This document shows, piece by piece, positions 9,781 to 48,690 of a DNA stretch of 64,000 nucleotides; the first letter of the stretch is position 1, and the number at the start of each line of letters is the position of its first letter. Origin of the DNA: Takakia lepidozioides (taxonomy: Eukaryota > Plantae > Bryophyta); NCBI GenBank assembly GCA_030704615.1, contig CM060733.1, positions 34,906,001 to 34,970,000 on the forward strand, read 5' to 3'. The position numbers and the translations under genes were made by a program. The notes below the pieces were generated by a model. It was given only the letters and a program-made list of their open reading frames with translations. It had not been told where the DNA came from and searched no databases.

Positions 9781-9808
9781 GGGTTTAGGGTTTAGGGTTT
9801 AGGGTTTA
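9781..9808 (+). repeat. Short interstitial plant telomeric repeat, (TTTAGGG)3 plus partial units
   Basis: GGG TTTAGGG TTTAGGG TTTAGGG TTTA read directly. Confidence 0.85.
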
Positions 9809-10616: not shown

Positions 10617-13427
10617 TTATTGGGCAAGCTCTATCCGGATGGAGTGAATGCTGATGGCAGTATCCTTGCTTCTGGGCACAAGACTGACTAGAATGCTGGG
10701 CTCCTTCTCAAGGCCAAGCTGCTTCAGCTTTGAGCTGATGCCTACCCTAAAAGAATGATCACGGCTCCGAGTGTGTTCTCGGGAATTTCCAGCAGTCGGA
10801 TAGGGATAGAAAGCGCCTGCATATTCTGTGCAACTCCAGGGTGTATGCTCATCCGCGTCGGGTAAATTCAAAAACAAGACAAACCCTATTGATTTACCTG
10901 ATGGTATCCTTATGCCTTCAATGGCAAGGACCTCTTCTTGCGATCCTGGTTCCTCTGGTTGCAACCCAAAAGCTTCAGGCTCTTTGGTTTGGATGATAAT
11001 GGGCACTGCTGGCCTTGAGATGTGAGCCTGGAAAACTGCACCAGTAAGAGGAATGTTTCTAATATGGAAAACTTCTGATCCTCGTGTGGCAATCAAATCA
11101 CAATCCTTGCTTGTTCGCTCTGTCTGCAATGAAGGGACGATGAATCTTGCAAGCTTGGCTATGCCCCTCGAGAGTTGCTCCTTGAAGAACTTTGGAGCAC
11201 AATCTGAAGACACTGGAACTGGAGCTGGCTTGGTGCTCAGACGGGTAGAATTGAACCAGAGCCAGTCATTCTCTACCTCTTCGTACCTGTAGCGCAATTT
11301 TTCAATATCAAGAGAGTCTGCTACCTGTACAAACCAGTAAGTGTCGTCACTGTTACTTGACCATTCCAAATCTGGACCAAAGTTTCCGTAGGCCTAGATG
11401 CGTAGATGCACATAATAACAATTCTAGAGAGGGAAGGCGAGACAGGAAAACCAACCTTCACACGAACAAGATCAGCGTTTTCATCGTAGAAGATAAACTC
11501 CGAATTGAGCCAGTCGGGGTCAGTAAGGTCGCCACGATGACCTCCTGGCAGGTGCTTCCAGAGATCCCACAAACGGTCCACATTGGCGTGATGTGTAAAG
11601 AAAATGGGATCTCTTGCAGCAGCAAAGCATCGGGTCATGTCCTCCCTATGTGGCTCCCTCTCATCTCCTGCCCCCACATGTACACAAAAACCAAATAAGC
11701 AGCTCTCGACAGTATCCTCTTACTGTCACCACCGTCACTGCATTAACGAAGACTCCCAGGAACTAGCATGTGGTTTCTTTGAAAATCTAGAATCTCCAAA
11801 CAAACTGCATGGGCGCCCGTCTAGGACTTGTAAGCAATCTGTAAGTCACCTTTAGACGCTGATTCATTTGACGCGCCAGACTCACCTCTCAAAAGCAGAG
11901 GATTGATCCAAAGTACAAGCTGCAGAGCCTCTTGCCATGTATATCTGGCAACTCAACGCACATTTGGCGTAGATGTTTGCCGATGGCTCTTTGCTTGATG
12001 AGCTCTTTCAGAAAGCAAACAATCCATTGTTTGCAAGTAAACTAGTGAGATTACTCAGATTCCGCCATGGAAGCATGGGCGACCGGGACAGCTGAGGAGG
12101 CGGAATGATTCCTACAGAGAGCGATCTATGAAGGTGGGTAAAGAACCTATCCAGTAGTGGACGCTGTCATGCGCCTGATTTTCGAAGGCGGAACCGCCAT
12201 AGAGCGGTGCGTCGCCACCGCGGAAAGGCTGCCCCAGAAACAGGAGCGGGGTGGGAGCGCCGCTCACAATACTGGTGTATAGAACGTTTCTATTCGCCGC
12301 CCGCTGCTCCTCCGGGCTGAGCACCGCGGCCGGCGGGCCGAAAGGCCAGAAGGTGAGGTCGACAATGGCAGGGGGCTGGTGGGCTGGGCTGCGTTTTTCG
12401 TCGAATAGCCCGACGTTTCGGCGGTCGACGTACATGGAGGGGAGCAAGTTCGAGGGCGGGTGGACGTCGAGCTGGTTGTCCCATTGCCAGAAGGGCAGCG
12501 CGAAGGTGTCGTCGCCCAACAGCGATGCGAGTATTCGCTCGTGAAAATACACGAACAAGCGATGGAAGGGCATAAGCAGCCAATTTTTGTGCACTTTCAA
12601 CTCCTCCGTGGAATTCACTTGCCTGCGATAACAAGTAGTCGGATCCAGAGTTGAGATCCAGTGTTAGAATCTCCACAAGTCGAGGTTGGTAGTCTAGTCG
12701 TAAGCTAGATGATCTTTCAGAGAGGCGATGCATAGCACAAGTCTTCTTGCTGCATGAACAGTTACTAGTTAGATTGTGCAACTTCGAATTTTTTTGCTAT
12801 ATAGTTAGTTACCTTGTAGCTATCGCCTCGATTATGAACTAAAATCTGTTGCTTAATGATGTGATTACGATTGAGTGCGGAAGAGGTTTCTCTCCTGTCG
12901 CTCCAGGAGAGGAAGAAAGAGGGAGAAGCTAGTATTCCAACAAAACAATGGCGAGACGACTGACTCAGAGAACGCGTTGAATAAATTGAGGGAGCACAAC
13001 TACTGCCAGGGCGAAGTTTTAACAATGCTTGCCTGTAAATTTCGGAACAGTAGGCACAGTGACTCTTGGCCTGGCGAAGGAACGATCGGGGGTCATCATC
13101 TGGAAGCGCTTTCATCATTTCATATGCTCGATTGAGCTTCTCTATGTACGCCTGATCCACGTTGTGTATGGATCGCCTTACCCGCATAGGCAAGTCTATG
13201 TTGAATTGGAAGTTGATTTGGGGCCTCTTGGGGGGCAGAAAGCAGCAGTCTAGTGGAGCATCGTTTTCAATTATTAGATTGCACCTGGTCAAGTCCGGGC
13301 CTAACACCGGAGCGGCATGCACCCTGTGTATCTTCCTACTACACAACGCCATAGATACTAGCATAATCGCCCACAACACTTTCTGTGTGCCCAATGCACA
13401 TCCTGGATGCAGTCCTTCCCTACCCAT
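10617..13427 (-). CDS. PPO: Polyphenol oxidase (type-3 copper), 4 exons, apparently intact, with N-terminal hydrophobic signal
   Basis: Predicted exons 13427-13033, 12622-12147, 11667-11456 and 11324-10617 splice in frame. CuA: HCAYC...KVHKNWLLMPFHR. CuB: ENQAHDSVHYWIGD...RDPIFFTHHANVDRLW. DWL domain (RVKVADSLDIEKLRYRYEEVENDWL) and C-terminal KFDV-like domain (EEVLAIEGI, TEYAGAF). Confidence 0.93.
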
Positions 13428-14770
13428 ACTTGTTGCCCACGAGTCCGAGACCAACTAAGATATCAGCTGTACTCTGCCAGAGAGAGCATAAGTGGAGAAC
13501 AATGCCTTGAAATTATCTTTCGGATACTCCTTGAAGGTGCAAGATTCGAAGACGCCCAGCTATGAGACGCCCAACCACGAGGCCACCCACTGTACATCAC
13601 TGCTGTAGCATAAGAGTTTCCAGAATCCAGACAGCCCCGATGCACACCACGACCCAACCATTTGAGAGCAGCGCACGAGTACCTCAGTCCCGAGCAATTT
13701 CCAGACCCTGCACTGTGAACCGACTCTACTCACCTTGGGTCCGCCAGGACCAAAGACTGTACCGTGCCAATCCGTCCTGCCCTCTCCCACGTGCGAGGAC
13801 CAGATCCAGGGTGGCTCCTCGCTGGGAAAGTTTCGTGAAGAGCAGGGTGTGCAAGAAGCACATGGGTAGTAACTAGTAACTATTGGGGTAAACCACAGTA
13901 ATAAATGAAACAACAGGTGCGATCTGAGCATCTGAGGATCCGTTGGCGCTGTGGAACATTCGATTGAGCCCTGTCAAATCCTCCTCAACCCCATTTTTTC
14001 CTTCTTTTCTTTCAAATTGCACTTGCATAACCTAGGTGATCCTGGGTTCAACCCTTCAACATGTGCCTTCACACCGTCCATTTGGCCCTCGATGGCCTGT
14101 GTTGAGCAGTAGGCTCTGTAAATTCACTGGACGTTAAGGAAATTTTATCTTTATCTTTTCAATGAAACTTCTATGTACTATTACTGTTATTACTTGGGAA
14201 GAATGACGGTGACTGTAGTATTAATTTCATGTATCCTGGTGGGAAATCTAGCGGTGAAATCCAGTCGTTTTTATCCCATGTAAAATGTATAGGATGCCGC
14301 AGTTCATAGGCCGCCCCTGACTAAAGCATTTACTGAAGCATTTAATGGCTGCTAGTGTTAAATTATACAGGGTGTTGGTCAGTTGCATCGGGATTCGGAG
14401 ACTGAAACAACCGCGCGTTATTCAGAAGTAGTAGAGAAGTGAGGTGGCAACTTGAAAGCCAGCACAATGCTCGTATGGTGTAGAAGAGCAAGATCAGCAG
14501 CTCGTTAGAAGTAACCTAAGCTCCTTATTGAGGATTGGCACGGACAGAAGGTTGTGCAGCTATGAGCTGAAGTGCGAGGATCTGCAACTGGGTCGAGGAA
14601 GGAGGAAGGAGGAAGGAAGACCCGCCTGCGTCCGAAGTGTCTAACCTGGTAGCTTCCGTTTTGAGATTATTCGACATGCTATCAGCTTCCTAGACATCTT
14701 ACACATCCAGATTTGAAGAGACCCATCGACGTTCTCGCCTCCATTCTAGACACAAGAAACGCCAGGAAGC

Positions 14771-16459
14771 ATGGGTATCGAGGCTGAGCCAAAGCTCCAA
14801 GTGGTCTTGCAAGACCCAACTCTGGTTGTTCCAGCTGTGCCTACCAAATCTCATGTGATGTATCTTTCCAACCTGGACCGGCCCCTGACTATTATTCGAC
14901 ACACTATGTACGTGTATCATGCCAAAGCGATAAGAGCCATGACAATCCAGCAAAAGCGATAAGAGAGGCACTTTCCAAGATACTTGTCCCGCATTACCCT
15001 CTAGCTGGAAGGCTTCAGATTAGTTCGGAGGGGAAACTCGAAGTCAATTGTAATGGCAAAGGGGCCGTGTTTGTGGAAGCTGAGGCAGATGCCGCTATAT
15101 CTGTCTTGAAAAGATATACCGAGTCTGGCAAGCCTCATCCGGAACTGATGCAACTGTTCTACTTAGTTCTAGAGGCAAAGAATCAGGAGGCATTGCATCC
15201 GCTACTTGAGACCCCCCCGTTGGTTGTCCAGGTAACTCATACTGCAGTCAAAGATTTGTTTTATGGTTGCCATCTGTGCATGCAGTGCCCGATTAAATCT
15301 TCCTGCGAGCTCACTGTAAGTGTTTTGAAATGTGTGTTTTGAAATATATCTGGAAATATTGATTGATGGATACCAGACTTGGATGTGAATGCATCTTTCC
15401 TCAAATGCTTGCACTCTTAGCAAGGTCCGATTGGTTATTCAGTATATAGACGACGACCTACCAAGGTGTTTGAATGCGAGATCATATGTCTCGCACTGTA
15501 TGCCGGACGCTCAATATCGCATCTGCGTCCAAAGGTTGAGTTCAGGAGTATCTAAGTTTTGGTTGAATCCCCCTTCTGTGTGCTCGCAGGTGACAAGGTT
15601 CAGGTGTGGTGGGTTCGTATTGGGCTTAGGCTGCAACCATGCGTTTCTGGACGGCTTCTCAGCCATGCAGTTCTTAAATGCTTGGGCCTCTATAGCGCGT
15701 GGAGACAGTACCCCTGTGCGTGCTCCATTCTTGGACCGTACTATTTTTCGCCCACGATCTCCACTTCAGATCGACTTTCCACACCATGAATGGCACGAGA
15801 TGGATCTGTCGAAAGATCTTTTGGGTGATGATTTTGAATACGACTCTTTCTATTTCACCCGTGAAACCCTCACAGAGTTAAAACAACAAGTATTGGAGGA
15901 GCCTGCGGGTAACGTGAGCAAGTGCTCCACTTTCGAGGCGCTCGCAGCCCATGTTTGGCGCGCACGCACGAAAGCACTTGAAATGGAACCATCCCAGAAA
16001 ACCAGACTCCTCGTGGGAGTTGATGTGCGTTCAAAGTTTGTGCCTCCCGTTCCCTCCGGCTTTGCTGGTAACGCAGTTTATGCAGCTTGCGCTATGACCA
16101 CAGCTGATGAGCTCCTATCCAAGCCTCTGTCTTATGCAGTGGAGCTTCTACAAGAAGGGATTGCTTTGATCACAGACAATTACTTGAGATCCGGAATTGA
16201 CTACATTGAGGACGTAAAGGAGATGCCATCTTTGGTCACCATGTCATTTACGATTACCAATTGGTCCCGATTGCCGTTCTATGAGATTGACTTCGGTTGG
16301 GGAAAGCCAATTTACTGTGGACCTCTCCCTCGAGGACCGCGAGAGATAGTTTGCTTTACATTGCCAGATGGAAGTGAGGCGGAAAAGAATAACTTGAGAG
16401 TGATTATCGGACTGCCTCCGAGAGCTATGAAGAAGTTCAAAGAGGCAATAGGCATTTGA
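14771..16459 (+). CDS. BAHD acyltransferase, hydroxycinnamoyl-CoA:alcohol (HHT/ASFT-like), 2 exons, with one apparent 1-bp frameshift near 14924-14926
   Basis: YLSNLD, HYPLAGRL, the conserved Q-intron (PLVVQ|VTRFRCGG, intron 15232-15589), catalytic HxxxD (NHAFLDG), KCSTFEALAAHVWRARTKAL and DFGWG. The frame from the ATG stops at 14962 unless one A is added to the AAA run. Confidence 0.88.
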
Positions 16460-18283
16460 ATCAGATGGGTTTCTGCAGAGTAACCGTTGTTTCATACAAT
16501 CTTATCTAATCAATTCTAGTAGGAGGTTTGCAATTAGCCGGCTAGTTTGCAACCTGTTTGCAATTGTGTGGGGTGGATCTTGCATCCGACGTATGCACCG
16601 TAGCGCCATACGTATACGGCCTATAAGAAGCGTTAAATGCATGTATTGTTTGTGTTTGTATGCGCCTCCAGTGCTGTAGTGCACACGCAATTCTCCATTC
16701 CTTCCTGCAATCACAAGAGCCTTGTCCTTGCTCACACGCAACTAAGAGCCTTGTCCTAGCATTGACTCTGTGTAACTGCTCCTACTGTGGAAGCTTCGTG
16801 CTTAGAAGCAGAGCGTGTAGGTGGTTAGGGTGATCAATGTCGGTCAACTATCTGAGGGACTATTGAGAGCAGGCTTTGTATCTGCAACGATCGCAATCAT
16901 ATGTATGGACTGCAGTTTCGTTGCGGACTTTAGTTCAGGGCTGTTGATGGCCCACATCTCTGGACCACAACTGTGTTGTTGGAACGTCAACCTAATTCTA
17001 GCGACTACAGAAGGTCGGCGACTAGTTTTCGCGTAGAGCAAGAATAGGGTGCCATAGTGCCATGTCATTGTTGCCACGTCATCATAGTCACATTATCGTC
17101 ACATGTCATCGTGCCACGTTTCGTCTCGTCGGCGTCAAAAGTTTTGGAACCTGCCCGGATTGCCTGGAAAATCCGAAAGAAACCTCTCTAGGGCCCAATG
17201 GACGGTCTGAAGGCACACGTTGAAGGATTGAGTTCCACCTACCTTAGGAGTCGTCTGGATGAATGTAAACACTGGATGAAGGGTGGATGACCGTTGCGAG
17301 GGAAACGGAATGACAAGCTGGCTTAATAAAGTAGGTTGTCTGGAGCTGGATGAGCATCTGAACATGATCTGTTAAGCCAATCACGAGTGGCCACTCTGTC
17401 AGATGGCATTATTTAAAGGATTACCTGGAAGCCTTCAGTGTGCTCAACTGGTGTACGTGTGTGTGACGGCGGTGGATGAATGTGTGTTGTAGTGACACGT
17501 CAAGTCTCCTCATAGTGTAGATCCTTTCTTCCTCGCAGGCACGCTTTACCAAGCTAAACATCCCCTCACTAGCACATACCTGCGGAGGAGTGGAATAAAA
17601 ACAGTGGTGCAGAATCTGGTTTTACAGCCTGAGCCAGAGGAACTGGCCCTGCCAAACTTCAAAGACAAAAAAAACAGAGATCACGACGGCCAGACTCACT
17701 TAACTTCACAACCGCAATCTCCAACACGCCTGCGATTTGAGGACAAGCTAACTTTTTTCACTTTTGCAGAAAAACAAAAAATGGGTGAATGACCTCGGCA
17801 TTCGCAATTACGGGCACATAGAAGGTGCTCTCTGATTGAAATTTCAGAGTGAAAAACCTAAAGTTAGGGCTGAAACTAGAGGATGACATTGCTCAATCTC
17901 GTACCAGAATTATATTCCATCATCTCATTTAAGTCTGCGATGTGTAATATCCTTGATTCTTCTACTCCAGCCGTGACAGCATTGCTAACTGAGGACTTCA
18001 TGACAAAAGTGGGTGTATCAATCCTTTTCACCCTAGTTAGAATTCGCATGACTAGGGAGCACTTGTGTTTATGGCTAGAATCCTAGATGAATTCAGCATT
18101 CAGTTCTTAATCGGTCTCAGCCTGAAATGGCCCAATGGGTGATGTTGAGCCCCGCCCCAAGTCCTCATCTTGAAGCCGTTTTTCATCAGAGAGCGGGGCA
18201 AATAGTCGATACAGCACTAATGAGTGCTAGTCTGTAACTTGGCATAAATAGATAAGTAAATCTTAAATTAGTCAGTGTCTGTG

Positions 18284-22233
<3,950 letters not shown>

Positions 22234-25200
22234 GGAGATCCCCAACCAGTTCCTCACAGAAGACTATTGCAGATGACGAACAGTTGAAGATCCAAAGCTC
22301 GATAGATGCTCTATAATTTCGAACATCTCTACTCCTTATCTAGCAGCGATTCTGGATTATACAGCACTCAGGGGGCATTTGCGCCCGGGCAGGGGAAATG
22401 TTTGAGTTTTGCTTTAGGTTTCTTTTTTGTTCCCCCCATAGAGAGTGGCGTTCATGTTCATGTTCTTTTCATATACTATTTGTTTGTTTGCCCATAGGAC
22501 ATCCTATTCCCGACCCAAACAGACCTTTTTTGGATCGTAATTGTAACAAGCCTAAAAAGGCCATCGGCTCTCAAAACATAAGAGAAAGGTGACAGTAAGG
22601 GGCATGCACGAGCGGCTTGCCACCAGACCACAGGCTGGTCACTTACCTTATTACTCACATGTGCCTCTCTCTTAACTCTACCGTCGAGAGGATCCAGAAG
22701 GCCAGCGGGGGCCAGCCACAGATACCCCACTCCCACTGTCACCCAACAAGATATGTACTTACATCTTCACGTAACGTAATGACAAGCACGTGGGTTGCAG
22801 CACTAATAGAAGCTTTGTCACACCCACGCCTAGATTCTCGAAGGCTCTCTCATAATCACACACAGTACCTAGGGCCGCTCTTCAAACCTCAACACTGAAC
22901 AATGCTACCTAATATATTAAGCACGAGCGGGATTTCAGATGGGCGTGGAAAGTAGTGGTGTCAAGTGTCAACCTCGTCTGTGTCGTCAACCTCGTTCAAG
23001 CATGTCCTTTGCTGTGAGTCAAGTTGAAGGTGTTGGAGATGGAGATCCACAGAATGGTCAAGTAGGATTAACTCTTAGATGCTACTCTTAGATGCTACTA
23101 CAAGGTTTAATATTTAGCAGTTACACGATCTATGATGACCACCACACTTAGTTGCTGCCCCACTCTCCGTTGTTTTTTCTGGTTGAAATCGCAGTGTGAC
23201 CATGTTACTGCAAGTCATCAAGAGTTACGAGTTACGCTGATTTATTTCAAGACGAAATATCTAAGTCAGAGGCCAACTAGGTTACACTAGGATTTAACGG
23301 AGACATGCAGTTGGCCAAGGTGTTGCTACTGCGTACTATTTACGGATAGATAGTGACAGCATTATTTTGAATTACTAGACTCCCGCCGGCGCCGAGCAAT
23401 CGATACTACGAATAGTATTTAGGCTTACTACAGAGAGAAGGTGCTGAAAACTTCTTTGTATGTTGATGCCTTATGGTGGAATTGCAGTAGTGTAAAGTGC
23501 TCCAATACCATCGTGTGTTTTGATTGCCTGAATCTTTGAATTGCTGTTCTAGATAGTATTGTGTGCTTTGAGTTTTTCTACAGTGTGTGCATGCTTGACC
23601 ATCCAAGGGAGAACTTGGACTTCCCTGTAGAGCTGTTTAGAGCTTCAGTATATAGTTAGCTCTTAGAAAGTTGGAAGTCGGACCTTTTTGACAGTAAGCT
23701 TTCCTTACTTGATCCACTTTAGAAGGATCTCCTTTTGCTGAGTCACGTTGGAGCATAGTGTAGGTATAGAGCTGCGCTGCTCGACCGATATGAGGGTGAC
23801 AGGGGCAGATCATGTCCTTTTTCCGCAGGACACGACAGGTTGTGATGGCTCCACGGTGCATGGCCTGATTCACTTTCTTACAAGTCCAGTGCCTGAATTG
23901 CCCCAGGCATATGTATCTCGTTGTAGGATTACGCGTGCGTTTCTGAGCCGGATAGGTATAAGATATTCGCTACTTCGCTGGCTACATCACTAACTACTAC
24001 ATACACACCAAGTAAACGTTTTCTAAGCTCACGAGTCATCACCCGTCCTCCGGCTCGGGATCCCAAATCGTGGAGACAACTTGGGCACAGACGCGCAGAC
24101 TACAGTGGGTTGCAGGTCCGTGTTGGATTTCGTCATCACAGTCTTGCTTCTGGCGCACTGTCCGCTGCTATCCGTCTGACATTAGAATCATTGACATGAC
24201 TTCGGAGGATCTCATGTTTTACTCGTTTTGTTGCGCGCTCTAGACTGAATTATCATAGCTGGACCTGAACTTGATGAGACAGAACGAACGCCCAGGAGAT
24301 GACGTCCGAATAAATAACTCCTCTCTCTTATTTCCGTGAATCAGTTGTCTGTTGTTATCTCGCTGTTTCTGTCTGGTGGCCAGTTCTCCACCTGTTTCTC
24401 AGGGCTTTGCCGTCCCTTTGCATGTGTTAGTTGAGAGCTTATGGCAGAGAGAAACAGCTGTATGCCTATAAACAATGTGTTGAGGCAGATTAAATAGCTG
24501 TTGCCTAGTGATCATTTTGGAAGTGGGAGAGGAAATGATGTTGAGATGACGTTGTTAGACTGGTTTTGTACCAGTATACACAAGGTGAGATTCATGTGGT
24601 TGCGCATAACATTTGCATGTACAGACAAGTTCAGGTTTTACCCTGTCCTTGTGAAAGGAGGTTGCAATTGGTAGATTGCATTTGTGGTGGGTTGTCGGAG
24701 GAGAACTCTCAGTAAATCAAGATCCTGCAGACGTGTGAGAATTACTTTACTTTGTAGACTGATCATCATATGCTGTTCTCCCTGCTTTGCAGCTTTCAAA
24801 TTATAACATCTTGGGAATAAACAATGTTGCCATGCAGACACCGTTGTAATTTACTCTGCACTCTCAAGAAAGCAGAGTTTTTTTAGGCGGGTGGAATTTG
24901 TTGAGATTTGCCCATCTGCTCTACAGCAGATGGAATGGAAGCTTACATGTAGAGTGGAATGTATTGAAATGTTCTGACACAACCAAGACAAAAGCAATCA
25001 CCAGCATGATGTACCTATGCAATGGAATTTCTTTGAGATGTTTTCACTTTCATCACATGTCTAACTGAGTTTATCTGAACTCCCGCTCCACGCCATAAAA
25101 CCTACTCTACAAATGGGCAGTACAGAATCAGACAGCCGACTTCCTTGTTCACGTTTAATTATCCCCAAACAATAATACTAGTGTCATGGTGGGTACACAA

Positions 25201-25828
25201 CTCGGTACCATCGAATCTTAGTCGGTGATAACATGGTTCACTTCTTTTCTTAACATGAAGTCGAACAGATTATTACAAAAGTTCAGCAGTATAAATCAAC
25301 CTTGTGTTCAGTGAGAGTGGAGTAAAGCTAAATTCTTATGGTGTAGTGTACTCTACATCAGCGTTGGAAAATTCTGATGTACAGTCCATGAAATCCAAGA
25401 AAAAATCCCAAATGTCTATCATCTGCAGCAATTAGAAGCGATATTTCAATCTGCTCTACTGAGAGAGCAGCTAGTTGGCATTGAACCAAGATGCTACCAA
25501 ATCACTTTCGCGAGTTTATTCCAATTCTAGCCCCAAAGGCTGTGTACACACACAGGAGCTCTGCCTCATGATAAAATATGCCTTACTTGAGCACATAACC
25601 CTGTCTGCACTGCAACGGTCGACCCCATGTAGAGTTTCAAAAAATATCTTTCACCCTCTCACAAATTGTTGATCTACTGATTAACACTAGTTGGCTGAGA
25701 AGCCCAATCACCGGAGTTCATCCTCACAGTGGAAAAATTACATAATGAGATTCCTTTGCTAAACTTGCTCAAACAGAGGGAAATTTGGTTTAGTTGTACA
25801 TTCTCACTGAGCCATCAATCGATATGGT

Positions 25829-28800
25829 TCACATTGAAGAACTGTGTCGCAGACAAAAGGATTCAATACGGTCCCACGACTCTTCCAGCAAAAGTAGAGG
25901 GATGGCGAACACCACCCGTATCCAATCTGGAGTGCCAAAAGCAGCACCTGTACATAGGTCACCAACTTCCATAAGATAACTAGTTGAATCACAATTCAAT
26001 TATCGAGAGGAGAGAGATTACAGATATCCTCCAGAATGCAGACATTTGTAGAGCGTTCAGCTGATCTTCATTTAACCCCAAATGTCACTCAGGAATGGAT
26101 GGAGCGCCTTAAGAAGGTGAGCTGCTGAGGGATATGTATGAGAGAGCGAGATGAGAGAGAATTAACAAAGAACCGTGGACGGTGGAAGATACTTCCACCA
26201 TGGGGATTCAATTCAGGATAAGGTGGAACCAACAAAGAACTACCTCAGCATAGAGAGAGAGAGAGAGAAAAGAGTGGTCGAGCAGGGTTGGCCGGAATAA
26301 TGAAAGTGAGATAGATGGAAGAGGCTCATTTTCTGGGAAATGCAATCACTTCAGCATTACAATTTGGTGGACAGGATTATTCTTTACTTTTTCATCATCT
26401 GTTTGTTTCACAGGACTGCATCTCATTATACTTCAATGGACGTTAAAATTGAGTTGGTGGGGTAACGTGAATGTCTTACCCATGTCTATACACAGGATTT
26501 CAACTGCTTCCTGAAGCCTCTTAGCTGTACTGGAAAACCAATTATTTGTTACTTCATACCAAGGATGAATATAGTACCTGGCAGTACTATGACTGACTCT
26601 TCCTTCACCAGTGCTGAGGCAAATTCCAAGTCATTTCGTAGGCCTTTAAACGCCCCCCTGTCAATTCTCACCTACAGGCACACACACAGCCAGTCAGCTA
26701 AAGACAGTAATCAAATTATCTCGTCATCTAAAATCAGGGAAATCCCAGTTCTAGGTTGTATCCACGAGGTTTGTTGGATCACACATCTAGCCTGAAACTT
26801 GAAGTATCCTCCTCTTCGCAGTATTCTCGCCTCTGCCATCGTCACCACCTGATAGGCTAGCAATGATCATCATACAACTCAGAAATTTGATGGAAAGTTA
26901 GCAACAGTACTTGGAAGTTGGAACTAACCATGATATACATTGCCCCCTGTGGCTTTATGGAGCAATGAAGGCCTTTAATTTGTTGGATACGTCTGTAGCA
27001 TAGATCAGCACCAGCCTTGAGTGACTTGAGTGTGTGATCATAGAAGTCATCAGGAGTGTCCAGCAGCATACCGGATACTGCAGCCTGCTCTCAGCATCAA
27101 TGAAACCCAAGCTGCTCAGGCAGTTAGCTTTGCTTAACAATACATCATGTATCTCTCCAGATCTACCGCTCATAAAATGAAATATTGAACGCAGTACTCT
27201 GTCCTTGTTCCAACTCCTAAGTCTGAGTGCATTGTGTCTGCAAAGTCTATACTACTGCAACTCGCCGACATTCCGATTTCCCGTCTATGCTAGTCGAATA
27301 AACCAGGCCATTGAGAGCAGAAAATAGGTGCATCACCTGAGATAATGTCGACGTCCCAATTGTCATTTGCATAAGCCTTGTTAGGGCCTCCACCACCTGT
27401 CCCAGCCATGATTTTATTAAAATTTAACTTATCATCCTCTCTCAGCCTGCCAAAGACATCACAACGTCACCATCTTGCGACAAAATTGTGCCTCTTCAAC
27501 TGTCATTCCGCAGCTCACCAGAGCTACCGTGATCAGCCTTGAGAGCACATGTCATTTGTGGCCATGATAGTGGACCTTACCTAGACAGATGTCCAGAGGG
27601 CTTCAAGCCCACCTTCTTTAGTCTTTTAATGGTAGTGTCCACCTGTCAGAAACTAATAAAGTGGCGGGGCATCCGTTGATTATCTCAAAAAGCATCATTA
27701 TTTCAGATAAAACACGTCGCTACCCTGCCTAACTGTTTTACAGACGAAAGATCCTGTCACAGCATGTGCGGCTGGTAATGGTATCCAGTTACTCAAACCT
27801 TTGTCATCAGATGTAGTTTGAACATTACTGTGCAAGGGAAGGATAATCAAGTGCAGAACACGCACCCTTGCTGTAGTTAGGATGCCTTTGGGGTCACCAA
27901 CAATGATCCACCCTAAGCGCCAGCCTGGTGCGAGCCACCTCTTTGAGATGCCCCCCACAGTAAGCACTGGCACTTTAAATGAGAAAGTTGCCATCGGTAT
28001 GAACTCTGCATCATCAAAGACCATATGTGCATAAATTTCGTCCGAGATAATTGGCACTCTGAGCCTCTCTGCAACAGCTGCAATCTGTCCTGGCGGGAGC
28101 ATGTTATCAGAATCTTGATGAGAGAAAGAGGAAGTAACTAGAAAGGGAAAACAAGCACACTAAAACTGACGCATCAAACAATCAATCAATTGACGGTGAA
28201 TCTTCCCCCAAACAGTCCATCCAAAAGATGAAGAATGTGCTGAGATAACAAATATTATAGGTCGCACCTTGGCCAAGTGTCGGTGATTGTACACAGAGCC
28301 ACATGGGTTGCTGGGATTACATATGATCCAAGCTGCAGTGTTTTCATCAACTAGTGACGCCACTTGATCCAGATCAACTTCCCAGTTTCTTTCTGGAAGT
28401 AGGTCATAGTGCCGACATTCCACCCCATAATAGTTGGCGAAAGTTTCGTAGACGGGGAAACCAGGCCTAGGCAGCAGCATGTTGACGCCCGTTCTCGCCA
28501 GGGCAGCAATGCACAGCTGAATCGCTTGAGAGCATCCAACAGTGATACATATGTCATCAGGTGTAAGCTGAAAGGGTAGAGTTGAGGAGTGATAGTCTGC
28601 AACAGCCCTGAAATGGTTAAAGAGCATGGTTAGAACTTCGGCTTAATTTGACAAAACTCTGACATTTTGTTACCACAAGTGAGCAAGACCTGAGCAGTGC
28701 AGCACGCTCCGAAAAAAAGAGAAGGAGCACGGCAGGAGTCGGCAGTACGAGGAAAGGACCAACTCGATGGAAAGATTCAGGTTTAACAAAATGATTAGAT

Positions 28801-29204
28801 ACGCGAGCAAGCAAACTAGAACTAATCTTAGCAACGGATATCTTGGCTCCTGTAACGAGCTTTGAAAGTAGAAAGGAAGGGAAATTGTACTTGCGACATT
28901 CATAGAATCCTGCGGAGTGTGCATATCCATTGAACTTGTAGCTCTTTGTGGCGGTCACCATTGCATCAACAGCAGCTTCAGGGACCTTCAGATGACCGAA
29001 CGCAGTCGGATCCCCTTGTGCCAGAGAAATTTTATCCTTGCCTTCCGTTGAGACCACACTCAGAGACTCAAGTAGATCTCGAATTGGGTTCACGCTCTGC
29101 AGAGCTGCAGTGCTTGCTCTCACATTCCATTCATGAACAAGGAACGTCTCCGCCTGATACCCGTGGCCCGACCTGTTGCCACGGTGCACAAACCTTTCTT
29201 GCAT
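25829..29204 (-). CDS. TAT: Tyrosine aminotransferase (PLP-dependent, TAT/nicotianamine aminotransferase family), 7 exons, intact
   Basis: Exons ~29204-28891, 28607-28268, 28084-27866, 27396-27337, 27084-26929, 26671-26578 and ~25947-25829. Motifs ISLAQGDPT, KFNGYAHSAG, LLPRPGFPVY, NPSNPCGSVY, SDEIY, PLP lysine GGISKRWLAPGWRLGW, KEESVIVLPG, WIRVVFA. The start codon is uncertain. Confidence 0.93.
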
Positions 29205-30656
29205 GGTTGCGTTCGGGTCACTTTCCAAAAAAAATCATGGAATACACAGATCTCTCCTTGCGTTCAGAGCGAGATGCCTGAACTAGGTGAGAAGATAAGC
29301 TGAGACTCAGTACTCCCCCTTCACTCCCGACAAATTCATTTATCTTTGCCCAAAGAAGCTCATGTAGCAGCCAGAGCCAGCTATCGCCGCAATATCACTC
29401 ACACGGATGTCGCCTTGAAGACTACCCGAGCGAGACACAGACAGACAGAGAGCGAAGGCTCCAGTGAAGAGAGAGAACGAGACTGACCGCCGCTATTACT
29501 GGGCCCAAGGCTTTTCTCGTTTTACCATTTTACTTTCCTCTATTATTGTTCCCAAATTTCCTGCTTTGGATGATGTAAACCCGCGAGCATACTTCATCTT
29601 GAACACCTGGACGAACAAAGGATAGAATTCATTCGTCATTCAGGAAGGGGTCCTCTTACGAACGGCCGCAAGGGGACCACGTGGACGCAGTAAAGATTGT
29701 GACGACAAAAGCCCCCTTTGATAGTACCACGCCAGGCTATGCCGCACAGGCACCTGCGGTATTTTCTTAATAGCACTATTAAATTACATTTTCCTACAGG
29801 CAATGAGAAATGAGTGGTAAAAGAAAAACAAATTAGGAAACATGATAGAGCCCATCAGCTGCACTGTGGTGGTTCTCCTGACAGACCAATCGAGATCACC
29901 TTACTGCATCACAAGCAGCACACATAAGAGGCCCTTTAGGGTTGATGGTCGGTTGATCTCCATGGTTGAAAGAAAAGTTAGCTGCTTGCAGGACACAATG
30001 CCAAGGACAATGTGGTGAGGGTTCCTTCCTCTTCAACACATTTCAGCCTGTTTTTCCCTCTCATGATCATCGTCCCTAATTTTTCATTCTGAAACCTGCA
30101 AGTTAGCTCGTTGGGGTGGGCCTATGGTGGTTTGGAGTGATTGGACATGTTACTAGTTACTACCAATGTGGCAACAGGAAAGCATCCGAAAACAGATAAC
30201 AGAGACGAGGAGTGATAGTGTGATCCAGGCTATCACCGTATAGTACATTGATCACGGGGTTAGTAGGCTGAACCCAGAAATTCTACCCGTTTGTCTAGTA
30301 TTTCAATTCTCTCGAGTCTTTACCAGTTGTCATGGAGGCTTTGTATCTAATCCTCTCACACAGTGCAGGATATTTATGATGACTAGTTACTATCGGAAAA
30401 AAAAATCAGCTTATAACGCAAGATATCAGGCCCATTAGGCCCATTTGTCGCCAAGAGATTGTGACTGCACTTACTCAGTAATACATGCTAATATAACACT
30501 TGTGACAAGTATGCAAGTCAATTGTTTTGTTCAGATTGTCATGAAGATTTTACAATGCAGAGAGGTTCTGGGGGCAAAATGGTGTCCATTATCATTTCCT
30601 GTAGTATTCCATCTTCCTATTACTGCGCCTCATCATCACTCAACCTCCAAAGCACG

Positions 30657-30900
30657 TCAGCCGGTAGCTCAGCTGGAGAGTGCACAGTGTGTCGCCCTGG
30701 TGGTTCGGGGTTCAAACCCGCTGCCCTGCCTGGTGTGTGGATTGTTCGTGACCGGTTGGTCTGGTGGTGACGTTTCCCACCTGTGTGCCTAATGGCTTAT
30801 CTGAAAGGGGGTTAATTTTTCCCCCTCCTCAAGGGCCTGAATTGTGAGCAGTCGCTCCCAGGTTTCCTTTTAAGAAAAGAAAAAAAAAAAAAAAAAAAAA
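30657..30900 (+). mobile_element. tRNA-derived SINE
   Basis: Pol III A box TAGCTCAGCTGG (30665-30676) and B box GGTTCAAACCC (30709-30719) at tRNA-like spacing. A ~150 bp unrelated body follows, ending in an A-rich tail (~30872-30900). Imperfect flanking repeat AACCTCCAAA / AACTTCAAAA. Confidence 0.78.
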
Positions 30901-31400
30901 CTTCAAAAAATACTGGACACCAACACTTCCTAATAATAAGGGCCCAGGTTTGAAAGGGGGTGTGGGGATTAGAGAGTGGTCCAGGAATTATGAAGCCGGA
31001 GTTATAGTAAGCTACAGCAGCAGGAGTTCAATTAATAACTGTCATGTAAGGGGGAAAAAAAAAAGGCTGGAAGGTAAGACCTATTAAATGTTCATGGTTG
31101 AATTGGGGTAAGCGTGGTTTCTAGGAGTGACGTGTGTTAGGGCAGCCTTCTAGAAGGTCCCACCGCCCCCAGGGTATATAAAGAGAACCCGGCTCTCTTC
31201 CCCTGCATCTTACTATCTATTCTTATTACTTACTACTTACTAGTACCTAGGGGGCTCTGCACACATGGCCCAAAAAAAAATGCAAACCAAGTAGAGGTAA
31301 TGATGAGTAAGGGCCATGTTCCTCTTTGCTATTTGGATCCAAACTCTGAGCTACAGATTGATGGTTGCTACTCTTATCATCTTCAGCAGTCATTGTGATG

Positions 31401-33674
31401 TTATTGGGCAAGCTCTATCCGGATGGATTGGATGATGATGGTATCATCCCTATCCTTGTTTCTGGGCACAAGACTGACCAGAATGCTAGGCTCCTTTTCA
31501 AGGCCAAGCTGCTTCAGCTTTGAGCTGATGCCTACCCTGAAGGAATGATCGTGGCTAGGAATCTGTTCTAGGATTGTCTATAGAATGCGGCCCCTGCATA
31601 TTCTGTACAACTCCAGGGTGTATGCTCATCCGCCTCGGGCAAATTCAAAAACAAGACAAACCCTACTGGTTTATTTGATGGTATCCTTATACCTTCAATG
31701 GCCAGGACCTCTTCTTGATATCCTGGCTCCTCTTGTTGCAATTCAAACGCTCCAGGCTCCCTGGTTTGGAGGATAATGGGGACAGGCCTTGAGATGTGAG
31801 CCTGGAAAACTGCACCAATAAGAGTAATGTTTGTAACATGCAACATTTCTGGTCCTCGTGTGGCAATCAAATCACAACTCTTGCTTGTTCGCTCTGTCTG
31901 CCATGAAGGCACGATAAACCTTGCAAGGTGCTCAAAAGGGTAGAATTGAACCAGAGCCAGTCATTCTCTACGTCTTCGTACTTGTAGCGAAATTTTTCCA
32001 TATCAAGAGAGTCTGCTACCTGTACAAATCAGCAAGTGTCTCACTGTTACTTGAACTTCAAATTTGGACCAAAGTTGTTCGTACTTTGTAAACGTAGGAT
32101 GCACGTATTAACCAGTACTGGCATTAACCGTTCTAGAGAGGGAAGTCGAGATGGGGAAGGCGAGATATGTCCACAAGTGGATAGAGGCATGGGGGTGTTT
32201 CTCGAAGGCGGTTGGAACATTGGGAGGGGCGTCGTCGCCGCGGTAAGGCACCAAAAGAAACAGGGACGGGGTGGGAGAGGCGCTCACAATACTGGTGTAT
32301 AGAACGTTTCTATTTGCCGCCCGCTGCTCCTCCGGGCTGATGACTACGGCCGGCGGGCCGAAAGGCCAGAAGGTGAGGTCGACAAGGGCAGGGGGCTGGT
32401 GGGCTGGGCTGCGTTTTTCGTCGAATAGCCCGACGTTTCGGCGGTCGACGTATGGAGGGGAGCACGTTGCAGGGCGTGTGGACGTCGGCCTGGTTGTCCC
32501 ACTGCCAGAAGGGCAGCGCGTCGCCCAACAGCGATGCGAGTATTCGCTCGTGAAAATAGACGTACCAGCGATGGAAGGGCATGCACAGCCAATTTGAGTG
32601 CGCACGTCAATGATCGCCGTGGAGTTCGCTTGACTGCGATAACAAGGAGTCGGATCCAGTGTTAGCTCATTGAAAGTTTCAGTCTCAACAAGTCGTGGCT
32701 AGCTAACTGATCTTTCGGAGAGGGATGCATAGCACAAGTCTTCTTGATGCATGTGAGCTAGTTATAGTTACTGGTATTCCACCAACTATGTGATGGGTGT
32801 CCTGATAAGGAGAAAACCATGAATATTTTGAAGCCGAGAATCACATGTCTTGTTTAAGTAGCATGCGGAGGTGTATCAGTGATCAAGTGAGACAGAAATC
32901 AGACGTGAGACGAAGAAGGAAAGCCCATGGGGACGAGTATATGTTCTACATGTATTTGAATCAAATCATACTCTCAACGAAACAGCCAGATGTTGTCGAA
33001 TGAGATTTTAAGGAGATGAAACTAGAATGCCAGGAGGATACGGCAACAACACATAGAGATAGCGGTCTTTAGACTTCCAAATCCTTTCCCATTACGTACT
33101 CTGTAATGCGATTTCACAAGATCAACCTATTCAGGACATTGCGCCAAACAAGAGGATTATAGAAGAGTGGGACTCAACACCTGAAAATGACTGTCAGGGT
33201 CGAGAGGACTCACTCAGAGAAAGTTGAAACGCGTTCAATAAATTGAGGGAGAGCAACTACTGCCAGGGCGAGGTTTTAAGAATGATTGCCTGTATACTTG
33301 GGAACAATAGGCACAGGACTGACGAAGGAACGATCGGCGGTCATCATCTGGAAGCGCTTTCATCAGTTCGTATGCTCGATTGAGCCTCTCTATGTACGCC
33401 TGATCCACGTTGTCTGTGGATCGCCTCACGCGAATAGGCAAGTCCGTGTTGAATCGGAAGCTGATTTCGGGTCTCTTGGGGGACAGAAGCAGCAGTCTAG
33501 TGGACGATCGTTGTCCATTATAGGTTTGCACCTGGTCAAGTCTGGGCCTAGTACCGGAGCGGCATGCACAGTGTGTATCTTCCTACTACACCACGCGATA
33601 GACACTAGCATAATCGCCCACAACAACTTCTCTGTGCCCCATCCACATCCTGGATGCAGTCCTTCCCTACCCAT
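31401..33674 (-). pseudogene. Polyphenol oxidase pseudogene, a duplicate of the gene at 10617-13427
   Basis: Near-collinear with the first PPO (MGREGLHPGC..., APVLGPDLTRC, identical long stretches in exon 2, RIELAQ* end). It has frameshifts in exons 1, 2 and 4, has lost the His of HCAYC, and lacks the CuB exon (RDPIF..HHANVD). Confidence 0.9.
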
Positions 33675-36036
33675 AGTTGTTGCCCTCGAATCCAGAGACT
33701 AACTGAGATATCAGCTGGACTCTGTGAGAGAAATGCCTTGAACTTGTACTTCGGATTCTCCTTGAAGGTGCAAAATTTGGAGACGTCTAGCTATCCAGTG
33801 CAAACAGCTCAGGAAACAGCAACTGCTCCGATTGTGCGATGTACCATAAGAGAGCCCCGGTAGATGATGATGACCACTGGAGTTTCCAGAGCCGTGTTTA
33901 CAATGTGTGTGGGCTGATACACTGACTTGGGAGGAGCTCGTGTTACTCGTTTTGCTGCTTTTCTGGACATTACTCAGGATGCCTGCAGTACTGGCTGAAG
34001 CTAAACGGCTGCAGACACTCATGTTTTAATTTTCTAGACCAGCACTAGGCCAGCTCCACCCTTCCGTTTCATGGAGCTACATGTATTTAGAACTGAGATG
34101 TCAGTCCATCTTAACTCTCCCTCGAACTCTGTGGACCCCAGCACTACAGTACCCAGCCATTGGATAACCCACTGTCAGCCAGCAAGAGCACTACACTAGG
34201 CCCAAAAATGGGCCCCACATTCAATAGTGGCGTTTTGTTGGATCTTGTCTGATGGCCGTGAAAATTGGCAGGTGCATGCAGGAGGCAGATGGCCAGGTCA
34301 CTGATGTGCGGTCAGGTTATTATGCAGCATGGCTTTCCAAGAGAGTGGACAATGGGCATCCATCATCCACCCCCTCTTCTGATGAGCTCGCACGCACCAA
34401 CTATGTATCCCACAATCATCGTTACTGCCTAAACTGTTTTGGGGCAGTAGTGGGCCATGGAACTGGATGATTGGGCTGAAACCTCTCACATGCTTGTGCT
34501 ACGGTATTGGGCAAGTAGGCTTCCATCGCAATCGATCCACATGACTATGGTAGAACGCTCAATCTATGACCAAAAATAATGTATTTGTTTGCTTCATCGA
34601 CTTGCTCCTCGATACCTTCTTCTGGGCTCCACAGGATGGAGCCCCTTTGGACATCATATATGCCATCTTATGTGAGATGTGTGTGTGTGTCTGTAACTGA
34701 GAGAGAGAGGGGGAGAGAGAAAAAGAGAGGGCACGCGTGTGTGTGGGTCAGACGTGTTTGTTTGCAGTTGATTGCAGGGAGGGGAGCACCAACTTTGCAA
34801 AGCAACCTCATCTTTACCTGCAGATTGTTCCTTCATCAGGTCCGTTCATTTGCAGCTGAATGCTACAGAGCTTACACATCACTCTATGCATACTGTCACA
34901 TTCGATTTCCACCGTCTCTTGGCCTCTGGAGAGTTGGTACTAATCGAGAGGGATGGAAAAGGATAGTTGATAACTAGCAGTTTGAATAGCTTAGTTTAGC
35001 TTGCTTCTCTTTCCTCCCTTCTTTGTCCTTTCCCAGGTTTTGGGATTTTTCTATCCTATGTTCAAATACCTCATGTTTTCTGTAAATAAAGCTGTACAGG
35101 ATTTCATCAGTTGATGAGACTGTCAATTGACAACATCATGGTTTTAGTGTCATTTTCAGCTGGGACTGTTACCTTGGAGTACTGACAGACATAGGTCATC
35201 GAGGATGGGAAGATGTGAAATGTGGACCCTCGGCTGAGCAATGAATACTGGCCCAAGTATTGAAATGTTTTAATAGTATCTGTCAGTAGGAAGTAAGTGC
35301 ACTCAGTCTGCAAAGATTTACGTAATTCAGTCTGGGAAATTGTTGTCAGCTAAATTGTATCCTGGACCTAAGCATAGGAGCAGCAATCCATGCTTCCATG
35401 ACGTCTGAATTTTCTTTCCTTCAATTCTTAGATCCCTACACTGCTTGGTTTGCGTTTTGGAGTTCGAACCATTGGTTGACGTAGGGGATGCGTCCCGGAC
35501 TCGGATAGTCTTTGTTTTGATTACGAGGACCACAGATCCTTGGCTATCTGCATGAGGGTTTGCATCTAGAGAATCTCTAATAGTTGTTTCTTGGGCTGCC
35601 TGCTTGGTCCAGTGAATGTTGTAAAGTTTCTTCCTTTCTTTCTTTCTTTCTTTGCACTCATCTTGTTATCCTATGCAGGATATAAACAGATCATCCGCTT
35701 AGTGTCCTTACTGACTTGCCAGTAATCTGCGGGTATAACATTTGCATGTACCTGCTGTGTTACCCACCTGCTGTGTTACCCAATGCTAGCAGTAACTGTG
35801 TGCAACATTCTGGATGGATATGGGAACAAACAATCAATCTTGTACCTAAGCAGCCTTGAAAATTGAAATTTGTAACACAAGTACATGTTCATTGACTTCA
35901 GAGTTCTCGGGTAGATAGGTTTCTGTGGCATTTCCTTTGCATTGTTGACTCTGCCAGACAGAGGTTGTTTTCCAATTTTGACTTGCAATCCTGACCATGT
36001 TTATGATTGTTTCCCTGGCTTTCAGTGAAACACTCA

Positions 36037-38905
36037 ATGGCAGAATCAACTAAAACCGCCAACAGGAGCATGGAGGTGAGCACTCCGCATCCTCTTGCAG
36101 GTGTGCAAAAAGGCTGGAACCCTGTGACAATGGGCTTCGTGGCATCCATGGCACTGAAGGCAGCAGTACTGCTTGGCATTCCAGACATCATAGGCAAAGC
36201 TGGCCCTGGGGCAACCCTATCTCTTGAAGATATTGCTGCACAGCTCCCAAGTGAATCTGTCAACACTAAACCCCTTCGTCTTATCATGGAAGAATTGGTG
36301 GTACACGGTGTTTTCAGCGCGACGCGACTTACATCAGAGTCTGGGAAGGTGTCGGTTCTGTATGGGCTGACAAATGCATCAAAATTGCTTGTAACGGAGA
36401 ATAGTGATACCTCTGAAGCTCCACGAGTCATCATGCACATGCACAAGGCTACCCAAGCGGCTTGGCACCACCTTCATGAGTCTGTTCTGTATGGGAAACA
36501 GCCATTCAAGGCAGCCCATGAGGGAAAGGTGAGCCTGTTCTTCTTCAAACTATGCAGTGGAACCTGAGGTTTCAGTTTTCTATTTGGCAGAATCAGGCTT
36601 ATCAGGCTTCATATTTTTCTTCAGATTTGGATGATTCAAGACCCTTTCTGGGGAGTGAGAAAAAAAATTGATCTGAATGCCTGTGTGCACTGCAGCTTGA
36701 TGTCTCAATCACCATACAAAAGCTCTTTTGAATCACAAATGCAGAAAGTAAACCATGGCTAGCGGCATCTGTGTTTGTGTTTGTTTGTGGATGTCCATGG
36801 CTTCATTTCTCTATCTTGTACAAATGGCCATTGCTACTGAATGCAGCCTAGTAATGCACTTATAGTGTGTTATAGTACTCAATCAGGAGATATCCGAATG
36901 TCCTTTCCCACAATTCCACTCCCCTAGCAGAGCTTTGACTTCCAGTGCTGAGTACAAAGTGGAAATGGATCCTGTGCTTGTGTGTTTCATGTTATGTATG
37001 TTCCTTTAACAACCCCTTGTTGCAATTATTGGTGGCAGAATATGTGGGAGTACGCAGGTGAGAACCCTGAATTCAACAAGGTTTTTAATGATGGCATGAC
37101 ATCCTTCTCTGTAATGGTGGCAAACCTTATTGCAAGAAATTACCATGGGTTCACGGATGTCAAGACTCTAGTTGATGTTGGTGGAGGATCTGGCATGACC
37201 ATTGGAATCATTGTTGCTGCAAATCCTCATGTTCATGGCATCAACTTTGATCTACCCCATGTTGTGGCTTTGGCACCCAGCATTCCTGGTAAGAGCTTCT
37301 TCTCCTGTGTCTCTGCACTAGTTGGGAAGGTCTTGTTCATCAACAGAAGGGAGTGTCAAGTGATATTTTGGGGGCGAGTATTTTGTGCAATCAGCCAATT
37401 TAGGGGTGAGGTTGAAGACTAAAACACTGTTCACATTGGCAAAAAGAGTTGGTGAAGATCTTTCTCTGATGGGCAGAGGACTGAGACTGAGATGAAGGTC
37501 GTTACGGCTGTTGGAATAATAGCTGTGCCATGTAACATCATTACCATTTTGATCTTCATTCATGAATGGCTGTGAAATTGACCTTCGCTACAATCTGTCA
37601 TCACATGGAGTGAAAAATGGTAGTACAAAGTATGATTGCTTGCAAAGAGTTAGTGGTGGTTGGGATTGTGAACATGGACTGTACTTTCTCAGGTGTGGAA
37701 CACGTCCAAGGAAGCATGTTTGAGAGCGTGCCAAGTGGTGATGCCATCTTCATGAAGGTCTGAGAAATCTGAACTGAGCCATTTCTATATAAGCTGACAG
37801 TCTGTCTTGCTAGAATGACAGATGAATGGTGCCAGCACACGAGAAAGAGTCAGTTGGTGTCAATCAAATCAATATATTCCTTTATTCACATGACAAAGAG
37901 CCAGGGCAGCTCATTTCTTGGCTTGCCAAGGTTGTCATTCAGGTTTTTAGTTCTCACAGTATGATCCAGGGCGTTTGCCCATTCCCTCCCCAGAAGAAAA
38001 AGTAAAAAGAAGGATTTATGGCAGCATGAAATTGAAGAGCATCTTCGAAAAAGATAAGGCTAGCAAACCTTCACCCCGCTGAGCCAAATTTAATTAGATA
38101 ACTACATCAGAAATTTACATTTACCTGCAAACATAAACTGGGGAAGTACTTATGTGGACTCTGTAGGAGATAGAAGGATATTTGTGGTACACGTGTGTGA
38201 GAGCGAGAGGAAGAAATGAAGAAAAAAGAGAGAGAATTCAATGGGAGGCCAAAGACGGATTTTTCGGTTAGCCTTCAGGCCAGATGATTCTAGCGTTGTG
38301 GGATATGGCCAAAAATTGCCATGGTGGTCAGGACAGGTTCAGGGTTTACGAGGATGCATATTGAGTGTTTTGGTAATTAAATATATAAAATTTGTATGGT
38401 TTAATTCCTAGTGTAGTCCTCTAGATTAACACAGATGTGACATGCTTGCTTGAATGTTGCACTGCCAGTGACATTCGAGAAGAAATGAAATGTCTACTTC
38501 ATAACGTCTGCATGGAAAGCTCAAAGAGCTTAGAGAGAGGGTGATGTGTCTAATTTTCATATCTCCTGAAGGGTTGTGGGTTGTGTTGAAACCTGTGTGC
38601 AGCGTATCTTGCACGACTGGGACGACGAGAACTGTATCAAGATCTTGCGTAACTGCCAAAAGGCATTGCCAGAAAATGGAAAAGTTATAATCTGTGATGC
38701 AGTTTTACCACCAGAGGCAGATTATGACAGCCAATTCGCCCCTTTAGCACTGATAATGGAACTAGTCATGCTTGTGCATACTGAAGGAGGGGAGAGAACA
38801 GAGGAGCAGTGGCGCCAACTGGTAGCTGCAGCTGGTTTCTCAAAGATCAACTTTGTTCCACTCCCAGATCCGAGGCACTCGATTATCGAGGCTCTTAAGT
38901 GCTGA
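36037..38905 (+). CDS. Class II (COMT-like) SAM-dependent O-methyltransferase, 4 exons, intact
   Basis: Exons 36037-36528, 37039-37288, 37693-37757 and 38603-38905. Dimerisation domain SMALKAAVLLGIPDII. SAM motifs LVDVGGGSG, GINFDLPHV, GVEHVQGSMFESVPSGDAIFMK. Catalytic ILHDW and GGERTE. Confidence 0.94.
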
Positions 38906-48537: not shown

Positions 48538-48690
48538 CTATCCAATGCAATGCGGACATAACCAATCCCCATCAGGAACCATCTCAAGAGGTGGAGTCAA
48601 GCATCCCATATGCCAACCTCTAGAGCATTGATCACACACCAGCATGGTGGCTGCCCCTCTAGCAGACCCATACAACATGCACCTCAAACT
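48538..48690 (-). other. PHD finger at the integrase C-terminus
   Basis: CMLYGSARGAATMLVCDQCSRGWHMGCLTPPLEMVPDGDWLCPHC matches C4HC3 with the second Cys changed to Tyr. Confidence 0.9.

Follow-up and report, generated by a model that had tools for sequence, protein, structure and literature searches.

A candidate phenolic gene cluster around a tyrosine aminotransferase gene in the moss Takakia lepidozioides

Genes of five enzyme families lie side by side in a short stretch of the genome of the moss Takakia lepidozioides, and the question is whether they form a biosynthetic gene cluster with a phenolic product or came together by chance. The analysis was done on 64,000 nucleotides (the window) of contig CM060733.1 of assembly GCA_030704615.1 (positions 34,906,001 to 34,970,000, forward strand), for which an initial annotation made from the sequence had proposed a single tyrosine-derived pathway. 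The T. lepidozioides genome has 325 Mb and 27,467 genes, and the species is sister to all other mosses (PMC13120521). At positions 10617-38905 of the window (28.3 kb; all coordinates below are window positions), a polyphenol oxidase gene (PPO1), a BAHD acyltransferase gene (BAHD), an aldo-keto reductase gene (AKR), a tyrosine aminotransferase gene (TAT), a broken second polyphenol oxidase gene (PPO2), and an O-methyltransferase gene (OMT) are consecutive. By layout, this resembles a plant biosynthetic gene cluster, with at least three adjacent non-homologous enzyme genes, and the locus is a real, well-formed, and testable cluster candidate.

Exon models were made from coordinates. Searches took one exon at a time, and joined models served solely for frame checks, pairwise comparisons, and trees, with an X placed at the break in BAHD. 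Pfam matches were obtained at the six loci (Tyrosinase, PPO1_DWL, and PPO1_KFDV; Transferase; Aldo_ket_red; Aminotran_1_2; Dimerisation and Methyltransf_2). The exon models have canonical splice sites, one of them GC-AG, and intact spliced frames were obtained for PPO1, AKR, TAT, and OMT. PPO1 (10617-13427, minus strand) encodes 596 aa in four exons (13427-13033, 12622-12147, 11667-11456, and 11324-10617). BAHD (14771-16459, plus strand) encodes about 443 aa in two exons (14771-15231 and 15590-16459). AKR (18284-22233, minus strand) encodes 333 aa in seven exons (22233-22189, 21648-21469, 21345-21145, 20561-20389, 20041-19942, 19228-19075, and 18432-18284), and TAT (25829-29204, minus strand) encodes 433 aa, also in seven exons (29204-28891, 28607-28268, 28084-27866, 27396-27337, 27084-26929, 26671-26578, and 25947-25829). 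PPO2 (31401-33674, minus strand) is a pseudogene and a duplicate of PPO1. OMT (36037-38905, plus strand) encodes 369 aa in four exons (36037-36528, 37039-37288, 37693-37757, and 38603-38905). No recognisable unrelated gene was found between the six loci using the open reading frame (ORF) lists of the two largest gaps (22300-25800 and 33700-36000), a Pfam scan, and an Atlas search. Pfam, exon models, and gap scans thus agree with the families and the consecutive order given by the initial annotation. PPO2 and OMT are head to head, 2362 bp apart; a hidden unrelated gene between them was considered and rejected, with no Pfam or Atlas match. The same gap holds several short stretches with splice-like borders (34566-35740), which could represent leader exons of OMT or the remains of a gene.

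As assembled, exon 1 of BAHD is one base short, with a 1-nt frameshift near 14931. This frameshift most likely arose in assembly (or polishing) because one extra base behind 14931 is carried at full depth both by a DNA run (X1) and by an RNA-like run from a different study (X5). The contigs of both runs also have 4-5 other letters than the assembly at the apparent frameshift site (14926-14934, plus strand), again at full depth, and the letters given by the assembly look like a 16-nt stretch about 30 nt downstream. Rare variants are lost from such contigs, which leaves a small chance of a broken BAHD allele. Read through with X at the break, BAHD is a protein of 443 aa with HxxxDG and DFGWG motifs and a single intron in its gene. 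A BAHD pseudogene was rejected on the extra base in the reads of two studies and on RNA-like contigs that lie over the exons only. A genuine BAHD knockout had been named beforehand as a result that would speak against the cluster; with the frame restored by the reads, the outcome came down on the side of the cluster.

The best matches of BAHD are omega-hydroxypalmitate feruloyl transferases (FHT/ASFT; up to 295 bits, 45-50% identity), compared with 198 bits to solved HCTs and 171 bits to rosmarinate synthase (RAS). An HCT/RAS-like enzyme was rejected on these scores, and the clade V membership assumed by the initial annotation was not borne out; by scores, BAHD is a diverged FHT-like member of clade VI. 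Its identity to FHTs is 46-50%, compared with 52-62% among those FHTs across liverwort, lycophyte, and angiosperm. In a tree without moss FHTs or an HCT outgroup, it fell on a long branch outside the conserved FHT core (this tree and the TAT tree below were quick trees with SH-aLRT [Shimodaira-Hasegawa-like approximate likelihood ratio test] support and no bootstrap). BAHD has the best matches, both motifs, and the single intron in common with FHT/ASFT/HFT enzymes of clade VI-1 such as MeHFT, and differs from them in its long branch, apparently outside the FHT core, and in having several close paralogues. The acyl acceptors of clade VI-1 BAHDs are primary alcohols (PMC6150198, PMC13710588). 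One fern RAS (NbHCT21) evolved within BAHD clade VI, near the fatty-alcohol transferases, in a subclade that is fern-specific (PMC13710588), and by analogy with it, the window enzyme might have RAS activity despite the mismatch to HCT and RAS.

PPO1 has all six copper His residues (CuA and CuB sets) and the DWL and KFDV domains. A homologue search with a PPO exon, too short to recover full-length relatives, and a metagenome scan with PPO exon 2 both gave no matches. Its N-terminus is a hydrophobic signal-peptide-like stretch, and the protein looks secreted; signal-like N-termini are likewise predicted for Physcomitrium PPOs (PMC3472199). The first CuB His is followed by Asp, and Cys replaces the gatekeeper Phe. 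An Asp at the former position is compatible with monophenolase activity, and the residues at the two sites are only hints on monophenolase (ortho-hydroxylase) activity. Intron 1 of PPO1 (13032-12623) has a GC donor that is retained in the PPO2 copy. A short upstream ATG frame (13560-13662, minus strand), possibly an upstream ORF, lies inside the transcribed PPO1 leader, the last 140 nt of which are conserved in PPO2. PPO2 has 81-86% nucleotide identity to PPO1, with exon 3 deleted, a 79-nt deletion in exon 4, and several frameshifts. The loss of exon 3 removes the third CuB His, and PPO2 lacks the full set of CuA/CuB His residues and domains of a plant polyphenol oxidase.

PPO1 and BAHD are head to head, and the 1343-bp spacer between them (13428-14770) is a candidate bidirectional promoter. 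RNA-like contigs extend into it to about 13721 on the PPO side and 14622 on the BAHD side. The middle of the spacer (14024-14158) is a very high-copy short repeat, covered in DNA run X1 at hundreds of times the depth of single-copy sequence, and is probably a miniature inverted-repeat transposable element. In Marchantia, the MTPSL2-CPT5 cluster pair is head to head over 1556 bp with a proven bidirectional promoter (10.64898/2026.07.16.738752).

For AKR, perakine reductase (AKR13) was the only plant PDB match. The Asp-Tyr-Lys-His tetrad is kept, the N-terminal loop is diverged, and the C-terminus is shorter than in perakine reductase; compared with perakine reductase (AKR13D1), DvCHR, and the Perilla AKR together, the catalytic tetrad is the same, and the N-terminal loop and C-terminus are different. 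Perakine-reductase-like AKRs are reported as aldehyde reducers (10.1101/2022.03.28.486017), perakine reductase itself takes p-coumaryl and cinnamic aldehyde, and AKR13 members have repeatedly been recruited to specialised pathways. TAT shares 70-74% identity with moss TATs, 63% with the characterised Anthoceros TAT, and 55% with the Marchantia TAT. In the tree, which included no leafy liverwort TAT, it was sister to Sphagnum plus Bryopsida, grouped with mosses at an SH-aLRT of 97, and had an ordinary branch length (0.24 vs 0.28 for Sphagnum). OMT is a class II (COMT-type) enzyme with the S-adenosylmethionine-binding motif and catalytic His. It scored similarly to COMTs, alkaloid OMTs, and other OMTs, some COMT substrate residues are missing, and COMTs and (iso)eugenol OMT are among its best PDB matches. 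BAHD, AKR, and PPO look specialised, judging by the long BAHD branch, the diverged N-terminal loop of AKR, and the missing gatekeeper Phe of PPO.

Transcription was assessed using runs X5 and X6, which were taken to be RNA, in a read comparison spanning 6000 bases, with TAT and OMT outside that span. Contigs of both runs cover the BAHD exons and not the BAHD intron. An X5 contig joins 18431 to 19074, which is the last AKR intron spliced, and the AKR 3' end is present in both runs. The PPO1 5' end is in X5 and X6 contigs as well (13399-13715 and 13545-13721). BAHD, AKR, and the PPO1 5' end are thus transcribed in the same two RNA-like samples.

As for the product, we tentatively favour a lineage-specific Takakia cluster that makes hydroxycinnamoyl esters of a tyrosine-derived (tyrosol-type) aromatic alcohol, with PPO acting last. 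TAT would convert Tyr to 4-hydroxyphenylpyruvate (Phe to phenylpyruvate would also be possible), a decarboxylase encoded elsewhere would give 4-hydroxyphenylacetaldehyde, and the AKR13 enzyme would reduce the aldehyde to tyrosol. The clade VI BAHD would then form an ester from the primary alcohol and p-coumaroyl-, caffeoyl-, or feruloyl-CoA, OMT would put a methyl group on a catechol hydroxyl, and a secreted or vacuolar PPO would hydroxylate or oxidise the ester after export, giving quinones or polymers that would serve in defence or UV screening. All of these steps are inferred; the family preferences fit together best with an aldehyde and a primary alcohol as intermediates. The locus may have originated from duplicated PPO, BAHD, AKR, and OMT copies placed around an old TAT locus, the second PPO having since decayed. 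Abundant UV-B-induced polyphenols have been reported for Takakia (PMC13120521).

Several points weigh against this tyrosol-type ester cluster. No decarboxylase was found in the window, as the initial annotation had stated in placing that step of the tyrosol route outside it. PPO is predicted in a compartment other than that of the cytosolic steps, and no paper reporting such esters in Takakia was found. Presence of contigs in X5 and X6 is presence, not co-regulation. In the DNA reads, PPO exon 1 and the BAHD exons are covered several times more deeply than single-copy sequence, which points to close paralogues of PPO and BAHD elsewhere, and with several of these, both genes could have landed here by chance. 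TAT looks like an ordinary housekeeping-like orthologue. No PPO, BAHD, AKR, or OMT was found within 10 kb of TAT in Sphagnum (two assemblies), Ceratodon (two loci), Physcomitrium, Marchantia polymorpha, or two moss-like metagenome contigs; in the window, AKR, PPO2, and OMT are within 7 kb of TAT, so a 10-kb range would have revealed them. The linkage was also absent beside the FHT-like gene of Marchantia paleacea, the neighbours of which are unlike those of the window BAHD, and beside 36 distant OMT relatives. Conservation of the cluster in other bryophytes was therefore rejected for the TATs, the FHT-like gene, and the OMT relatives compared, and the arrangement is taken to be lineage-specific. 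Single-copy orthology without conserved linkage, which the initial annotation had named as evidence against a cluster, was found in part, in that TAT is orthologue-like and the linkage is not kept in the other bryophytes. The TAT on Ceratodon chromosome 11 (L008:1978-22936) has another metabolic set as neighbours, a 2-oxoglutarate-Fe(II) dioxygenase gene and an epimerase/short-chain dehydrogenase/reductase gene.

Chance co-location is about as likely as the tyrosol-type ester cluster. Without a shared pathway, the locus would be a transposon-rich gene island in which members of expanded families (PPO, BAHD, OMT, and AKR) came by chance to lie around an ordinary TAT, as suggested by the orthologue-like TAT with its unconserved linkage and by the multi-copy depth of PPO and BAHD. 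With equally tentative credence, at most PPO1 and BAHD would share a promoter, BAHD would make cuticle- or wall-type alkyl hydroxycinnamates, AKR would detoxify carbonyls, and TAT would serve tocopherol and plastoquinone supply or Tyr catabolism; the nearest characterised kin of BAHD being FHT/ASFT and the predicted secretion of PPO fit such separate roles. Many predicted plant clusters fail co-expression tests, which also counts for chance. Six enzyme loci in a row without another gene are, however, unusual under independence. The expected number of runs of five per genome is 0.0007-0.27 (27,467 genes; 3-10% of them assumed to be in tailoring families), and the excess of the gene run over this usual chance expectation is suggestive, independence being a weak assumption since such genes are not placed independently. 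Each of the five families can act on phenolic compounds, three enzymes have diverged on the substrate side, and most proven plant clusters are lineage-specific too, so that missing synteny is weak evidence for chance.

An unlikely alternative to both is a cluster for C6-C3 (monolignol-type) esters or phenylpropenes. AKR would act on hydroxycinnamaldehydes, OMT on caffeyl-type catechols, and BAHD on cinnamyl alcohol, PPO would oxidise the product, and TAT would be incidental or would supply Phe from phenylpyruvate. The two aldehydes taken by perakine reductase and the COMT and (iso)eugenol OMT structures matched by OMT agree with this, and no absent decarboxylase is required, but a TAT in the middle of the cluster is left unexplained. 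Alkaloid OMTs match the window OMT equally well, with some COMT substrate residues missing, and asarone in Takakia was not confirmed in the literature searched.

Improbable, and less likely than either the tyrosol-type ester cluster or chance co-location, is the depside route of the initial annotation. TAT would give 4-hydroxyphenylpyruvate, AKR (or an HPPR elsewhere) 4-hydroxyphenyllactate, BAHD would be a convergent rosmarinate synthase, PPO would add the meta-hydroxyls, and OMT would methylate. The Asp after the first CuB His of PPO1 is in keeping with that PPO role. The window BAHD is a diverged member of clade VI, which holds the fern RAS, and CYP98 does not hydroxylate these esters in ferns and hornworts, where the meta-hydroxylase has not been identified (PMC13710588). 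The fern RAS subclade is fern-specific, however, and rosmarinic acid is given for hornworts, ferns, and seed plants, not mosses, in the introduction of the same source (PMC13710588). The route is weakened because BAHD is nearer to FHT/ASFT than to HCT/RAS, the AKR family reduces aldehydes, and PPO has a signal-peptide-like N-terminus, which probably keeps it apart from the cytosolic intermediates that CYP98A would have access to. To our knowledge, no perakine-reductase-like AKR has been reported to reduce 2-oxo acids, and HPPR is another enzyme family, with no member found in the window. The gene identities, the compact array, and the plausibility of a phenolic pathway stood, and the depside route, with an aldehyde reductase family (AKR13) in place of HPPR and a PPO that looks secreted in place of CYP98A, proved weaker than proposed.

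The window set falls outside the canonical rosmarinic acid pathway (TAT, HPPR, RAS, and CYP98A; Lamiaceae, Boraginaceae, Anthoceros, and Neoblechnum) because neither HPPR (a D-2-hydroxyacid dehydrogenase) nor CYP98A was found in a search confined to the window and BAHD lies outside the HCT/RAS clades (Va/Vc). Entry from Tyr through TAT and a BAHD ester step are common to both; the window differs in having AKR13, PPO, and OMT. We know of no report of rosmarinic acid genes being clustered. The tyrosol, hydroxytyrosol, and acteoside routes of olive, Rhodiola, and Lamiales run from Tyr through an aldehyde to an alcohol, with PPO as a possible ortho-hydroxylase and a BAHD hydroxycinnamoylation, as proposed here. 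They differ in using an aldehyde synthase or decarboxylase, non-AKR reductases, and UDP-glycosyltransferases, and in acylating the sugar; these routes are not known to us as clusters. Bryophyte clusters found or known are terpenoid, among them the momilactone cluster of Calohypnum. The Marchantia MTPSL2-CPT5 monoterpene cluster is like the window in that non-homologous genes lie together with a head-to-head pair about 1.3-1.6 kb apart (10.64898/2026.07.16.738752). These two terpenoid clusters have a scaffold-forming synthase and proven products, whereas the window set is phenolic, without a signature synthase, and only a candidate. Neither a described cluster with these components nor a phenolic moss cluster was found in the literature searched, which left out most subscription papers. 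It is rather doubtful that this is the first phenolic moss cluster as well as the first plant cluster based on TAT, AKR13, and PPO, with Tyr-derived hydroxycinnamate esters (possibly a rosmarinic-acid-like depside made by an independent route) as products and PPO giving the meta-hydroxyl.

The surroundings of the cluster match the transposable element and pseudogene debris described by the initial annotation. The left flank has a PPR gene of the PLS type (6500-8500), which carries an E+ and a partial DYW domain and is in several frames as assembled, and the right flank has an RPAP2/Rtr1 remnant (40431-42500) with stops and frameshifts as assembled, followed by transposons. A short interstitial telomere-type repeat (7-nt unit, 4.6 copies) lies at 9777-9808, about 800 bp downstream of PPO1. 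Further right are a Ty3-like retroelement (48538-53376, minus strand), which has a PHD-finger-like end and, at 50668-51501, a stretch resembling a methyltransferase, a piggyBac-like DDE_Tnp_1_7 transposase in two frames (56948-58379, minus strand), and a proline-rich ORF with a weak SET-domain match (61792-62763, plus strand). Related repeats of 280-356 bp occur at 43449, 44014, 47853, 55763, and 60007.

The BAHD gene was probably misread as broken in the assembly and would be missed by annotation-based cluster searches, and errors of this kind may make other genes of the assembly look like pseudogenes. If the cluster is true, it would offer enzyme candidates for polyphenol chemistry, of which little is known in Takakia, a UV-B-adapted endangered plant. 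The five small genes would then bear on which enzyme puts the meta-hydroxyl on Tyr-derived esters in non-seed plants, in which CYP98 does not do so (PMC13710588), and on how often clade VI fatty-alcohol transferases were recruited to aromatic acceptors.

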